Positions 40,689 through 46,600 of a stretch of DNA of 64,000 bases are shown one piece after another. The stretch's first letter is position 1; every line of letters starts with the position of its first letter. This DNA comes from Macrostomum lignano. Taxonomy: Eukaryota. The position numbers and the translations under genes were made by a program. The stretch spans positions 36,009 to 100,008 of the forward strand of contig NIVC01003392.1 in assembly GCA_002269645.1 (NCBI GenBank), read 5' to 3'. The notes under the pieces were generated by a model. That model saw only the letters and a list, made by a program, of their open reading frames with translations. It was not told the origin of the DNA and did no database searches.

Positions 40689-43600
40689 ATGCGCCCTCTA
40701 TGGCTGCTTCTCCTATCAACCGCCGCGACCTTGACTGCTGCCGCCCCGGTCACCGTCACATTCCCGTCCGGAGAGGAGTTCCTCCCCTGGACAATCAGTC
40801 ACCGCCCGGCCATGAGGATCCCGAAGACACGGAAAGCTTGGCGTTCGAACGTCGACATGAAAACGCGAGGCTGGCCTGGTGAGCTGGCAAGCTGAACTAC
40901 TTCTAGTAGCTATATGGAGCATGATATGAAAATTTTATCTTAAAATCTTACAGGGGCCTGACTTTAAACGATTGGTGCGGCAAGAAGTGTCAGATCTTCC
41001 GAGCTCACCCGGATCTGATTGGCTGCCTGTCGGACATGAACACCGAACTGCAGCATGCGGACGGTGGCCGAGTTCGATTGGTGCGCGGGTACCTGCCGCT
41101 GTCCGAGGCTGGGGTTGCACCAGCTTTTCCCGTTAACTACCATGCTGCGGGTGAGTGATACTTCTACTGCTACTACTACTACTACTACTACTACTACTAC
41201 TACTACTACTACTACTACTACTACTACTACTACTACTACTACTACTACTACTACTACTACTACTACTACTACTACTACTACTACTACTACTACTACTACT
41301 ACTACTACTACTACTACTACTACTTCCCCTGCAGGATCGGCAGCTGAAATTTCCCTGCGCTCCGCCGTGACCCGGCTGACCCCGGCGCTTCCTCCTCCGC
41401 GGCCGCCGCAGACTCGCAGCGCCGTCTTGCGGCCGCATTCGCTCACGCATGCGCCACCCGCCTGAGCGCCGCCGGCTGGGACTTCGGCCTCGTCGCCAAT
41501 GTCAACCAGCAGTCAACCCTGACGCTGCTGCTGCAGAGCCGCAGGCGGCCATCAAAGCTGCTGTTTCAGGCCGCCCCAGGTAGCGACTTCGCCGACTCCG
41601 CCGAGCTGGAGGCCTGGACTCGCCGGCACTGGGAGCTTGGTTTCCTGGCCTCGGGCTTCAACGCTAGCGCCGAGCTCGCCGACTGCCAGCTGACCAACCA
41701 GCAGCCCTGGACGTCGGCTTCGAAAAGCGCCGAGGAGGCGGTCGGTCCCGGGGACTCGCTGCCGGTGCCGCCCGACTCGCCCGACTATTCCAGTCTGATG
41801 CAGTACCCAGCCTCCTCTGGGGATGGCCCAGACCGGGGAGCTCTGGAGTTCCCGGGCTGTCCGAAACTGCTGAGCAGCTGGGAGCGCCACATCAGCTGCG
41901 GACAGCGGCTGATGGCGCCCAGGATGTTCCAGTCAGTCCGGAGGCTGGACGCCATGATGAGGCTGCGATGGCCAGACCGGCACCTGAAGGTTGCGGCGGG
42001 ATGGGAGTCGCCGACTGGAGGTTTGTGTGGACAGCTCATAAATATAGAACTGTCCAGGTAGATAAATCAGATCCTGCATCCCAGGTAGATAGATCAGATC
42101 CCACATCCCAGGTAGATAGATCAGATCCCACACCCCAGGTAGATAGATCAGATCCCACATCCCAGTTAGATAAATCAGATCCCACATCCCAGGTAGATAG
42201 ATCAGATCCCAAACCCCAGGTAGATAGATCAGATCCCACATCCCAGGTAGATAAATCAGATCCCACACCCCAGGTAGATAAATCAGATCCCACACCCCAG
42301 GTACGCTCGTAGATAGATCAGATACCACATCCCAGGTAGATAGATCAGATCCCACACCCCAGGTAGATAGATCAGATACCACATCCCAGGTAGATAGATC
42401 AGATCCCACACCCCAGGTAGATAGATCAGATACCACATCCCAGTTAGATAGATCAGATCCCACACCCCAGGTAGATAAATCAGGTCCCACGTCCCAGGTA
42501 GATAGATCAGATCCCACACCCCAGGTAGATAGATCAGATACCACATCCCAGGTAGATAGATCAGATCCCACACCCCAGGTAGATAGATCAGATCCTACAT
42601 CCCAGGTAGATAGATCAGATCCCACATCCCAGGTAGATAGATCAGATCCCACATCCCAGTTAGATAGATCAGATCCCACATCCCAGGTAGATAGATCAGA
42701 TCCAACACCCCAGGTAGATAGATCAGATACCACATCCCAGATAGATCAGATCCCGCAGACACACTGCTCTACTCATAGTAGCAATCAAAGCGTCAAACAC
42801 ACCATAAATGCCAATCAAATCCCGCCCCAGACCGTCCCAGCCTTCGCAGCGACGGGCGTCAGCTGGAATTGGAGCTTCTCGGCCCTGACGGCGAAGCCAT
42901 CGGCGAGCTCGACCTCCTGCGCCAGGTCGCCAGCCTCGCCAGGTGCTCCGGCTTCGATTTCATCGACATTCTCGACGCCGACGCCGACAATTCGACGGAT
43001 TCGACCTCGACGCCTCGCCTTCAGCTGGCGGTTCTGAAGCAGCGGCAGCCGGCTGCGATGGGTTCGCCGCTGAACCCTCCGCGGCCTGTGGTGTTCCACC
43101 AGACTGTGGGTGCCCAGCTGCTGCCTGTGGAGCCACCCGCCAGGCTGGCGCACGACTATGACGTCACTGGCATGGAGGCCCTGGCCTTGGCCGACCGCCC
43201 GCTGTTCGGTGGGTTTGTGGAAGCCTGTCTGTCTGTCTGTCTGTCTGTCTGTCTGTCTGTCTCTCTGTCTGTCTGTCTGTCTGTCTGTCTGTCTGTCTGT
43301 CTGTCTGTCTGTCTGTCTGTCTGTCTGTCTGTCTGTCTGTCTGTCTGTCTGTCTGTCTGTCTGTCTGTCTGTCTGTCTGTCTGTCTGTCTGTCTGTCTGT
43401 CTGTCTGTCTGTCTGTCCGTCTCTCTGTCTGTCTGTCTGTCTGTCTGTCTGTCTGTCTGTCTGTCTGTCTGTCTGTCTGTCTGTCTGTCTGTCTGTCTGT
43501 CTGTCTGTCTGTCTGTCTGTCTGTCTGTCTGTCTGTCTGTCTGTCTGTCTGTCTGTCTGTCTGTCTGTCTGTCTGTCTGTCTGTCCGTCTGTCTGTCTGT

Positions 43601-46600
43601 CTGTCTGTCTGTCTGTCTGTCTGTCTGTTGTAGTTATGCCTTATTCTCCCAAACATCTATCGTTTGTTGTTCTATCTGAATAACACAGTGATTTGAGTCA
43701 CTTCTTCACTCGCTCAATCTGTCCACCCAGACGGCTCCCTGGACCCGGCCACGCCCCTCGGAAGCCACGCACGCCTGGGAATGTTCGTCAGTCCAAGTGC
43801 CGAGTTTCGGTGAGTCCCACAGCTGCGAAATCAAATCCCACAGCGCTGGTTGTGCGAGGATCAACTCGATTCAATAAAGTTCAGAAAGTTTTGTCGTTAA
43901 GAGCAGATATTAGCTCGTAGTTCCGGCGAGATGAATTTCCATTTTCAGTTACTTCCGCCTTCACCCCGCTCTGGCCGCCTGTTTCGACGCCCTGATTGAA
44001 TCTGTGTCGAACAAAGTGCGACAGAGCGCGGCTCCCGTGCTGGTGCAGCGGGCCTACCTCACCGAGTTCGAGGAGCGCGCCATGCTTGAGCCGGCCAGCG
44101 ACGCCCGGGTCGGCGGTCACCCGGAGGGCGTCGCGATGCAGGTGGCTTTTGACTCGGCCAGCCCGCTGTACCGGGCGGACCGGCACTCCGTCTGGAGACT
44201 GGCCGAGGCCGCCGCCACCATCTGCGCGCCGAGGTTTCACGAGCACCGCAGCCTGTTCGGCGTCGGGGTGTACAATGAAAGCGTGTACATCGACATGAGA
44301 CCGGTGGCCAAGGTGAGGGGGTCACACAAGGTGAATCAGTTTGGGTCATCTCAGGTGAATCAATTAGGGCCATCTACGGTGAATCAATTGGGGTCATCTA
44401 CGATGAATCAATTGGGGTCATCTCCAGTGAATCAATTAGGGTCATCTCCAGTGAATCAATTAGGGTCATCTCCAGTGAATCAATCGGGGTCATCTCCAGT
44501 GAATCAAGTGGGGTCATCTCCAGTGAATCAAGTGGGGCCATCTCCAGTGAATCAAGTGGGGTCATCTCCAGTGAATCAATTGGGTTCATCTCCAGTGAAT
44601 CAATCGGGGTCATCTAAGGTGAATCAATCGGGGTCATCTCCAGTGAATCAATTGGTGTCATCTCAGGTGAATCAAAAATGGGTTAAAAAAGTGAATCAAT
44701 TGGGGTAATCGCATGTGAGTCAACTGGGGATTATCTAAAGGTGAATCAATTGGGGTCATACAAGGTGAACCAATTGGAGTCATACAAGGTGAATCAATTG
44801 GGGTCATACAAGGTGAACCAATTAGGGTCATACAAGGTGAACCAATTGGGGTCATACAAGGTGAACCAATTGGGGTCATACAAGGTGAACCAATTGGGGT
44901 CATACAAGGTGAACCAATTGGGGTCATACAAGGTGAACCAATTGGGGTCATCTTGGCGATTATCTAAAGTTGAATCAAAGTGAATTTCAAGCCTTTATGT
45001 GAATTCAGTCCCCAACTGTCTTTTATCCAGGTGTGGCTGCAGTGCTCACCGGAGACCTCTCACTTCACCGTCTGCCCGCTGAAGCCGCCTCCGTCAGCAG
45101 TCACCGTGGGCGCCAGTCGCAGCTCCGGCTCGGCCTCCGAGGACTTCAAAACCTACTTGCTGGAGAAAGCGCTGCAGGCCATTCACGGCAGAGTTGTGGA
45201 GCCTTTGGCTGGAGATGAGAACTGCGACTTCGACCAGCCGCCGCAAGACCAGAGCCCCGGCTTTCTGTACAGACCGCCTCCGCCACGGCCTCAGCCTGAG
45301 GGCGATGAAGCTTTCGGTGTGTCCGCGGAGCCATAAACCCCCAACCTGTCCCACGCGGAGCCATAAACCCCCAACCTGTCCCACGCGGAGCCATAAACCC
45401 CCAACCTGTCCAACGCGGAGCAATAAACCCCCAACCTGTCCCACGCGGAGCCATAAACCCCCAACCTGTCCCACGCGGAGCCATAAACCCCCAACCTGTC
45501 CCATGCGGAGCCATAAACCCCCCACTGTGTCTCACACGGAACCATAAACCCCACCCTGTCTCATGCGGAGCCATAAACCCCCCACTGTGTCTCACACGGA
45601 ACCATAAACCCCACCCTGTCTCATGCGGAGCCATAAACCTCACCCTGTCTCATGCGGAGCCATAAACCTCACCCTGTCTCACACGAAACCATAAACCTCA
45701 CCCTGTCTCATGCGGAGCCATAAACCCCACCCTGTCTCATGCGGAGCCATAAACCCCACCCTGTCTCATGCGGAGCCATAAACCCCACCCTGTCTCATGC
45801 GGAGCCATAAACCCCACCCTGTCTCATGCGGAGCCATAAACCCCACCCTGTCTCATGCGGAGTCATAAACCCCACCCTGTCTCATGCGGAGCCATAAACC
45901 CCCAACCTGTCCCACGCGGAGCCATAAACCTCCAACCTGTCCCACGCGGAGCCATAAAACCCCTAACCTGTCCCACGCGGAGCCATAAACCCCCAACCTG
46001 TCTCATGCGGAGCCATAAACCCCCCACTGTGTGTCACACGGAACGATAAACCTCACCCTGTCTCATGCGGAGCCATAAACCCCCCACTGTGTCTCACACG
46101 AAACGATAAACCTCACCCTGTCTCATGCGGAGCCATAAACCTCACCCTGTCTCATGCGGAGCCATAAACCCCCAACCTGTCCCACGCGGAGCCATAAACC
46201 CCCAACCTGTCCCCCCAACCCCCAACCAACCCCCAGCCATAAACCCCCAACTCCAGACCGAGCTCGTAAATCCTTCTCAAACCCCGCAGCCATCCCATCA
46301 GCCACCGAGTGCCACTGGGGCAGCTCATCGGAGTTCTGCTCAAAGTCGCACTCCCCCAGAGCCGCCCAGCTCGCCCACCTGTGGTCGGACATCTCCGCCA
46401 AGCACCTGCTGGCCGGCTCCGACAGAGTGCGCCAGGCCATGGAGGACTGCCTGCTCACCTGCGCCAGCGCCGGCTGCATTGACAAAGCAGACGGTCCCTG
46501 GAGCAGCAAGCTGGCGGCCTGCGAAAACCTCGCGCACTGGCTGCCCTTCCAGCTTGAGAACAACCTGCCGGGCCGGCTGAGCAACCTGTACACCCCGGGT

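Follow-up and report, generated by a model that had tools for sequence, protein, structure and literature searches.

A spliced gene of Macrostomum lignano encodes a predicted secreted protein with a divergent Hedgehog-N domain, two M15A-peptidase-like modules and a CD38-like C-terminal domain

What kind of protein holds a Hedgehog-type ligand domain next to modules that resemble bacterial cell-wall peptidases? This question is raised by a gene in a stretch of 64,000 nt of Macrostomum lignano DNA (the window; gene positions count from its first letter). The region is eukaryotic, with coding blocks of 59-69% G+C set apart by introns full of micro- and minisatellites. A previous reading of the letters alone (the sequence-only reading) had described here a signal peptide followed by three related modules, and both were recovered in our analysis. 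The answer that we favor, with moderate confidence, is a secreted four-domain protein of a conserved holozoan family with a probable non-catalytic role. Its order would be a signal peptide, an M15A-like module, a Hedgehog-N-like module, a second M15A-like module, a linker and a CD38-like domain.

The conceptual protein matches the M. lignano hypothetical protein BOX15_Mlig010553g1 (P0001, 1012 aa, without Pfam annotation) with 96% identity over 100% of the query, and the locus is a copy of the M. lignano gene Mlig010553. P0001 itself is encoded at a second genomic copy, L001 (GCA_002269645.1, NIVC01000284.1), where the exons translate exactly to it. In the window, the gene spans 40689-49498 on the + strand and has 9 exons, and all of its introns are GT-AG. 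Its parts are as follows.

40689..40878, + strand: exon 1, with the start codon, signal peptide and N-terminal segment; it holds the first frameshift
40784..40787, + strand: C-run of 4 C in the window versus 5 in L001; a 1-nt deletion that leads to a stop at codon 66
40954..41150, + strand: exon 2, the first half of M15A-like module 1, with NYHAAG
41335..42020, + strand: exon 3, module 1 (second half), a linker and Hedgehog-N-like module 2 (first half), with QRLMAPRM; it holds the second frameshift
41371..41373, + strand: C-run of 3 C in the window versus 4 in L001; the second 1-nt deletion
42831..43208, + strand: exon 4, the second half of module 2 (SGFDFI ... RLQLAV) plus a linker
43731..43809, + strand: exon 5, a short stretch leading into module 3
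43949..44312, + strand: exon 6, M15A-like module 3, examined with an AlphaFold2 model and Foldseek
45031..45316, + strand: exon 7, a conserved linker with the ortholog consensus RIVDPD..AC....P..QS
46290..46810, + strand: exon 8, the Cys-rich first part (CTA) of the CD38/ADP-ribosyl-cyclase-like domain, with invariant C..N..HW and NPxP motifs
49163..49498, + strand: exon 9, the second part (CTB) of the CD38-like domain, with the stop codon after DLNHL

Splice phases match at junctions 2/3, 3/4, 4/5, 5/6, 6/7, 7/8 and 8/9, and all junctions agree except for two 1-nt shortfalls. Agreement at so many junctions is beyond chance and, therefore, indicates a real spliced gene. The sequence-only reading had proposed such a gene, with a signal peptide first, and the exon that encodes this peptide does start at 40689. 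All the peptide strings that the reading quoted were found again when the three forward frames of the + strand were translated. Its count of eight exons in 40689-44312 was not; that interval holds 6 exons and only the first ~630 residues, and the higher number probably came from counting the two frameshifted exons twice. Nor does the gene end at 44312, since P0001 extends it by three further exons (45031-45316, 46290-46810 and 49163-49498) and ~380 more residues. The list of open reading frames (ORFs) fragments the gene, as that reading noted. The gene is not unannotated; GenBank already lists the hypothetical protein and UniProt auto-names some of the orthologs. The signal peptide in exon 1 is the sole strongly hydrophobic stretch of the protein and, thus, the product is predicted to be secreted and soluble.

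The search with the conceptual protein also returned P0002 (UniRef A0A1I8J987), a partial model and the second public one for this gene, which stems from a different annotation. It was aligned to window exons 3-9, omits part of exon 3 and differs at the exon 7/8 and 8/9 junctions. Its UniRef name, 'PKS_KS domain-containing protein', is spurious and looks like an annotation artifact, as no ketosynthase similarity was seen.

The identity of module 2 (residues about 265-430, internal and behind an M15-like module) was examined by profile searches. On its own, the M. lignano module scores 19.9 bits with Pfam HH_signal, below the cut-off of 22.1, and 23 of its 24 weak PDB matches are Hedgehog proteins (best E=0.006). 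Its orthologs score above the cut-off (PF01085, 26-80 bits), and the family profile matches Shh-N at E=5.7e-17 across the core, with the N-terminal part aligned more weakly. While the M. lignano module is marginal alone, the ortholog profile decides the homology and makes the match more than chance. Module 2 is, by these profile matches, a divergent Hedgehog-N (Hedge) domain.

When the positions of this domain were mapped to mouse Shh numbering (PMC6027127), the zinc ligands H141/D148/H183 were found to read R/E/Q in M. lignano, the substitutions that had been noticed from the letters alone. The calcium-site acids are gone as well; the six positions read R, G, Q, A, E and a gap. Orthologs usually keep H141 and often E91, D96, E127 and D130, and carry a Cys-rich insert, WCG..C.DC, within the Hedge domain. 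The full H-D-H zinc triad was present in none of the 36 Hedge modules (HhN) of the superfamily. Pfam gave no Hint domain in the M. lignano protein or its orthologs, as had been expected of the former, and its C-terminus turned out to be CD38-like. Neither a GCF cleavage site after the Hedge module nor a CGPG motif is present in the M. lignano protein. GCF tripeptides do occur in some orthologs, but they belong to the CD38-like domain (ALEGCFG) and were, therefore, ruled out as Hedgehog cleavage sites.

Modules 1 and 3 are related to each other. In M. lignano they match by BLASTP at E=0.007, and their family profiles align by hhalign with a probability of 99.3% (E=1.6e-20). A profile of 44 such modules (M modules) also aligns with the family Hedge profile (90.9%, E=1.1e-6, 82 columns), in register through a helix, a strand, the His motif and a second helix. 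This match places modules 1 and 3 in the Hedgehog/DD-peptidase superfamily. Sequence searches against known peptidases gave little. The M. lignano modules 1 and 3 alone matched nothing in Pfam or among PDB sequences, and the M-module profiles, when run against the PDB, picked up no M15 structure by sequence. Peptidase_M15_3 was the sole recurring Pfam family, seen weakly in 3 of the 44 superfamily M modules (best E=0.008, below threshold). A designed helical repeat protein among the PDB profile matches was set aside as spurious.

The structural evidence is decisive here. An AlphaFold2 model of module 3 reached a mean predicted local distance difference test (pLDDT) of 83 and a predicted template-modeling score of 0.78. 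Its top Foldseek match in the PDB was the M15 endopeptidase ChiX (probability 0.99), with VanXYc, the RB49 endolysin and LdcB also listed. Histidine-kinase ATP-binding domains were mixed into this list and were considered fold-level noise, as the viral library gave clean M15 matches. Among these were phage proteins named 'Peptidase M15' or 'Peptidase M15A C-terminal domain' as well as L-alanoyl-D-glutamate peptidases; E values reached 1.5e-5, with template-modeling (TM) scores of 0.57-0.67 and a root-mean-square deviation (rmsd) of 3.2-4.0 Å over ~143 columns. Every named match in the top 30 of the viral library is a cell-wall enzyme or peptidoglycan-binding protein, most of them with the label peptidase, M15 or M15A. 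Module 3 is predicted from its model to have an M15A-peptidase-like fold, and module 1 is assigned the same fold through its homology to module 3.

The scaffold of this fold is kept, with a Gly in 77/77 modules, GxG, the D.R pair and the pattern GxGxY...x[Y/F]xDxR. The zinc-ligand positions are not; module 1 has H/E/L there and module 3 has H/Q/Y, and the H/D/H triad survives in 1 of the 77 M modules of the superfamily. The ligand readings and the fold match bear out the proposal, made from the letters, that modules 1 and 3 are M15A-like and keep the first His alone. The one module with a complete M15 zinc motif is P0031 residues 114-251, from a Logan assembly (LHAAGLALD ... HLHVDFR), which may, from its sequence, be an active representative of the ancestral state.

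The part of the protein beyond 44312 had been missed by the sequence-only reading, and its account was, therefore, incomplete in a way that changes how the protein is read. The C-terminal 379 residues were modeled with a 34-sequence alignment, which gave a pLDDT of 83.7 overall and about 95 through residues 110-340. All top 50 Foldseek matches in the PDB were to ADP-ribosyl cyclase from Aplysia or to human CD38, over ~280 aligned columns, at a probability of 0.99-1.0 and with a lowest E value of 7.6e-5. By this model, the C-terminal ~280 residues are a CD38/ADP-ribosyl-cyclase-like (ARC) fold with a helical lobe and an alpha/beta lobe. By sequence, Pfam Rib_hydrolayse matched none of the 34 members and a PDB search found nothing. 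A forced hhalign comparison with a CD38 sequence, checked against the PDB, was not significant (0.4%), yet it was collinear. It pairs C-x-N-x-x-H-W with C119...W125, C-I-[DE] with TLE146D, NPxP with NNPV, and YN..V-x-V-x with FGSVE226V.

To place the protein in a family, P0001 was compared by exhaustive phmmer with 1.84 billion representative proteins. There were 92 matches at E<=1e-3, of which 13 are 914-970 aa long with ~30% identity and several are aligned end to end. The alignments with P0003, P0007, P0009 and P0013 run end to end at E=1e-61 to 4e-81. Full-length relatives occur in mollusks (Patella, Argopecten, Solemya, Potamilus, Sinanodonta, Magallana, Tegillarca and Batillaria), the annelid Owenia, the hemichordates Glandiceps and Saccoglossus, the echinoderms Asterias and Anneissia, and amphioxus, which has two paralogs. 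The brachiopod Lingula has a shorter, partial relative. All of them are 'uncharacterized' or auto-named 'Hedgehog N-terminal signalling domain-containing protein', and no vertebrate or ecdysozoan protein was found among the named matches. A full-length word-indexed homolog search was swamped by low-complexity words and returned only two M. lignano entries, and the same search with module 3 returned seven short fragments.

Architectures were typed with profile hidden Markov models built from the family alignment. Type A, to which M. lignano belongs, is M - HhN - M - linker - CTA - CTB, about 950 aa. P0001 matches the six family profiles in this order, although the test is partly circular since P0001 was in the alignments. 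In the sponge Oscarella pearsei (P0037) and a choanoflagellate (P0021), the type-A set stands at the end of longer proteins. Type B is HhN - HhN - M - CTA - CTB (Haliotis, Octopus, Saccostrea and Sinanodonta). Type C consists of very large intronless metagenome proteins ending in M - CTA - CTB; of three that were examined, P0040 has fibronectin-III, bacterial-Ig and cadherin-like domains upstream and the other two gave sub-threshold matches only. Judged by these profiles, the family architecture is conserved from a choanoflagellate to chordates. The M. lignano protein is the most divergent known type-A member. It is without the Cys-rich Hedge insert, without the polybasic KRRRR-type site that most orthologs carry before the CD38-like domain (in the exon 7 region), and without the C-terminal tail KRS...NWE..W that most of them share.

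Further observations were made on individual family members. In both type-A and type-B tails (such as P0003 917-958 and P0016 1370-1404), a conserved ...R....NWE..W... stands behind a basic KRS/RRRS site; this suggests that processing at a second site releases a C-terminal peptide of ~30 aa. In the choanoflagellate protein P0021 (2145 aa, from Craspedida sp. UC1), the M - HhN - M - CD38-like set is preceded, at residues 708-784 and 1078-1166, by a C2 domain and a genuine Peptidase_M15_4 domain (40.8 bits). The HAYGTAVD motif of this peptidase looks intact and, thus, the polypeptide possibly holds an active M15 peptidase beside degenerate ones. An hhalign comparison of the M profile with this Peptidase_M15_4 segment gave nothing. 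The oyster ortholog (Magallana (Crassostrea) gigas/angulata, P0012 cluster) is found on many contigs of ~3 kb in independent Logan assemblies. This is the expected mRNA size and suggests that the family is expressed in oysters.

Taken together, the protein would be an extracellular pseudoenzyme without catalytic activity. Each of its three clefts of peptidase origin would hold a ligand (a peptide, muropeptide or glycan) without cleaving it, in the way of non-catalytic proteins related to other cell-wall enzymes, and the CD38-like domain would be a binding or structural module. Peptidoglycan sensing, which the sequence-only reading suggested, may be one such role. The polybasic site that most orthologs have ahead of the CD38-like domain points to processing by a furin-type convertase, which would give an N-terminal three-module product and a C-terminal CD38-like product; M. 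lignano has lost this site. The ancestor was probably a secreted effector in which, as in bacterial polymorphic toxins, domains of a cell-wall peptidase were joined to one that consumes NAD, and it was later domesticated. Several points weigh against this reading of the protein. Binding is a function that we infer, and the fold of module 1 depends on its homology to module 3. The similarity to CD38 is structural only, with a moderate TM score (~0.5, target-normalized) and an rmsd of about 8 Å, and the mapping of catalytic residues is provisional, so that the domain could still be active. Finally, with its two frameshifts, the window copy may not yield any protein.

This last point leads to the alternative that survives best, which concerns the window copy and not the family. 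The window copy may itself be a true pseudogene among near-identical copies, with the L001 copy still functional; we regard this as a serious possibility, if a little short of an even chance. The window is collinear with L001 at ~97% identity through exons, introns and flanks. The exons differ by 11 substitutions and two single-C deletions, and the spliced coding sequence as it stands meets a stop at codon 66. The two copies differ mostly by substitutions, about 1-3%, and are truly diverged. Single-base indels occur between them at ~1 per kb in noncoding DNA and, therefore, 2 indels in 3 kb of exon are what neutral decay would be expected to leave. M. lignano is described as a neopolyploid (PMC12896417), and since the copies differ mainly by substitutions the window is a distinct allele or duplicate in this species.

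On the other hand, both deletions lie in homopolymer C-runs, which is typical of long-read assembly error. With the two missing C restored, the coding sequence is open through all 1012 codons. The exons are better conserved than the flanks (0.36% divergence apart from the two deletions versus 0.6-2%), all 16 splice sites are intact, and most of the coding substitutions between the copies are silent (8 synonymous versus 3 non-synonymous), a sign of constraint. The window copy is either a decaying duplicate or mis-assembled at two homopolymers. The sequence-only reading had already noted two 1-nt gaps, and both exist, but the first lies within exon 1, at 40784-40787, instead of at its junction with exon 2. 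Exon 1 had, therefore, been read out of frame in its second half. Two other ways of mending the frame were ruled out: a short GT-AG intron in exon 3, because L001 shows a plain C4/C3 difference, and an alternative exon 1 donor or exon 2 acceptor, because P0001 puts the shift within exon 1.

Another possible explanation is that the protein is an active enzyme and antibacterial effector, with a CD38-like domain that still hydrolyzes or cyclizes NAD(P)+ through other residues or M15-like modules that cleave peptidoglycan. The catalytic set of ARC enzymes consists of two Glu (E146 and E226) and two Trp (W125 and W189) (PMC12605009). The match to the CD38 fold is strong, and on the provisional, low-confidence mapping M. 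lignano keeps the Trp125-equivalent as W, in an HW motif that all type-A proteins share, and reads D at E146, while W189 falls into a gap of the alignment. An acidic residue stands at the Glu226-equivalent in 12 of 15 proteins of the 'other' class, to which the giant proteins belong, and in 4 of 13 type-A proteins, so that the ancestral domain was probably active. Orthologs that retain this Glu include Glandiceps P0004, Anneissia P0006 and Potamilus P0010. One superfamily member also retains a complete M15 zinc triad. However, on the same provisional alignment E226 reads T in M. lignano. Of three zinc ligands, modules 1 and 3 have each lost two, and module 2 has none left. Activity in the M. 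lignano protein is unlikely, although its CD38-like domain may retain some NADase activity.

A role in the Hedgehog pathway had also been suggested by the sequence-only reading, as a decoy. In Shh, the calcium site takes part in the interaction with CDO/BOC. The zinc site takes part in the interaction with Hhip and possibly Ptch1 (PMC6027127). A ligand or decoy whose Hedge-like module binds Patched, Ihog/CDO or Hhip and modulates signaling is very improbable here: module 2 is truly homologous to Shh-N and many orthologs retain the first zinc His together with most calcium-site acids, but none of the zinc and calcium ligand positions is unchanged in M. lignano, the module is internal, with no N-terminal Cys for palmitate and no Hint or GCF for cholesterol addition, and thus cannot be lipidated, and the family is also found in a choanoflagellate and a sponge. 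A canonical Hedgehog ligand is not known from these two lineages.

A binding, non-catalytic secreted protein, as favored above, can be set beside several known systems. The Hedgehog proteins (Shh/Ihh/Dhh and Drosophila Hh) share a homologous Hedge domain of the same Hedgehog/DD-peptidase fold family, and Drosophila Hh has, like module 2, lost the peptidase-type zinc motif (PMC6027127). In these proteins, the Hedge domain directly follows the signal peptide, whereas in M. lignano it lies between two M15A-like modules and ahead of a CD38-like domain, and the protein has no Hog/Hint, GCF or CGPG and, hence, no lipid modifications. Hedgling (Nematostella Nv200640 and Amphimedon) and an Oscarella 'Hedge' expressed sequence tag (EST) are also Hedge domains without Hog in early-branching animals (PMC2362128). 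Hedgling is very large and sits in the membrane; its Hedge domain is N-terminal and precedes VWA, cadherin and EGF repeats, and M15-like and CD38-like domains are both absent from it. By contrast, Pfam found no VWA, cadherin or EGF domains in the M. lignano protein or its orthologs, and no membrane anchor was seen in M. lignano. The Oscarella EST has a Hedge domain with neither Hog nor VWA after it (PMC2362128), and since Oscarella pearsei P0037 has M - HhN - M - CD38-like, the EST may belong to the type-A family.

The M15 peptidases (phage endolysins, ChiX, VanXY, LdcB and the bacterial 'Hh/DD-peptidases' of Roelink 2018) share with modules 1 and 3 the fold and the scaffold motifs x-x-G-x-A ... 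G-x-G-x-Y ... x-D-x-R, and these modules are also related to Hedge. The M15 enzymes act on cell walls; the M. lignano protein is a eukaryotic secreted multidomain protein in which H-x6-D and the third His are replaced and neither module reaches a Pfam threshold. CD38, BST1, the Aplysia cyclase and Tox-ARC (PMC3482391, PMC12605009) have the same two-lobed, disulfide-rich fold and the collinear motifs C..N..xW, C-I-[DE], NP and YN..V-x-V-[E]. Animal CD38 has been proposed to stem from bacterial polymorphic-toxin 'Tox-ARC' domains (PMC3482391). In polymorphic toxins, this domain is likewise at the C-terminus of a long secreted protein, as it is in the family, where the orthologs have a likely cleavage site before it. 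The differences are the lack of detectable sequence similarity, a catalytic Glu that is not conserved in the animal family and is Thr in M. lignano, and the fusion to Hedge and M15-like modules, which has not been reported for CD38 or Tox-ARC. Rusticalin from Styela rustica (PMC6339383) is another metazoan secreted protein with a peptidase-like domain of the MD clan (Hedgehog/DD-peptidase fold) and of phage or bacterial origin. In Rusticalin, however, one L-Ala-D-Glu-peptidase-like domain follows the Cys-rich repeats, and Hedge and CD38-like domains are absent. Our searches showed no homology to Rusticalin.

Because the defining features of the Hedgehog, M15 and CD38 families fail in each case, the M. 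lignano protein is not a strict member of any of the three. Each fold is known, and so is Hedge without Hog. Our literature searches turned up no account of a Hedge domain that lies between M15A-like modules and ahead of a CD38-like domain, and what is new is the conserved architecture of a Hedge-domain protein.

The surroundings of the gene are marked by extremely dense tandem repeats, with a different micro- or minisatellite in nearly every intron and in much of the window. The repeats in and just before the gene are as follows.

40368-40636: (TGTC)n array upstream of the gene
41159..41324, strand not applicable: (TAC)n microsatellite in intron 2
42054-42752: intron repeat, 27-mer
43225-43628: intron repeat, (CTGT)n
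44318-44953: intron repeat, 24-mer
45324-46211: intron repeat, 29/60-mer
46847-47407: intron repeat, 11-mer

Farther upstream, there is a (GTA)n repeat of 1.3 kb at 38000-39336, additional repeats at 16808-17434 and a repetitive region of ~2.6 kb at 23354-25970 with an open frame on both strands. Downstream, two long ORFs at 51920-52885 (+) and 54727-55122 (+) look like exons of another gene. The former starts MGQSNS, a possible N-myristoylation signal, and an in-frame poly-Tyr run in these ORFs comes from a (TAC)n repeat. Pfam gave no match for the neighboring ORFs in the window, including both of these. An end segment of ~2.6 kb of L001 (27293-30035) matches the window at 58312-59971, 59748-62393 and 61750-64000, and these three successive matches indicate a tandem duplication of units of about 2 kb downstream of the gene.

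It is the family, beyond the window copy, that is the object of interest. Four enzyme-derived domains in series appear to have lost catalysis, and the family adds an animal CD38-fold lineage that sequence searches do not detect. A true Hedge domain beside two M15A-like modules, from a choanoflagellate and a sponge to amphioxus, provides sequences for a domain phylogeny with which ideas on the origin of the Hedgehog ligand domain can be tested. One such idea, which we put forward as doubtful, is that the Hedge domain predates Hedgehog. It would first have been part of a pre-metazoan secreted proprotein in the choanoflagellate-animal ancestor, together with M15A-type modules and a C-terminal CD38-type NAD-consuming domain, as a domesticated polymorphic-toxin-like effector, and the ligand domain would later have been drawn from this family and fused to Hint. 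M. lignano has transgenesis and RNAi tools and, thus, the function of the protein can be tested. If the idea is true, the surviving bilaterian family would be an unrecognized extracellular signaling or immune system of its own.

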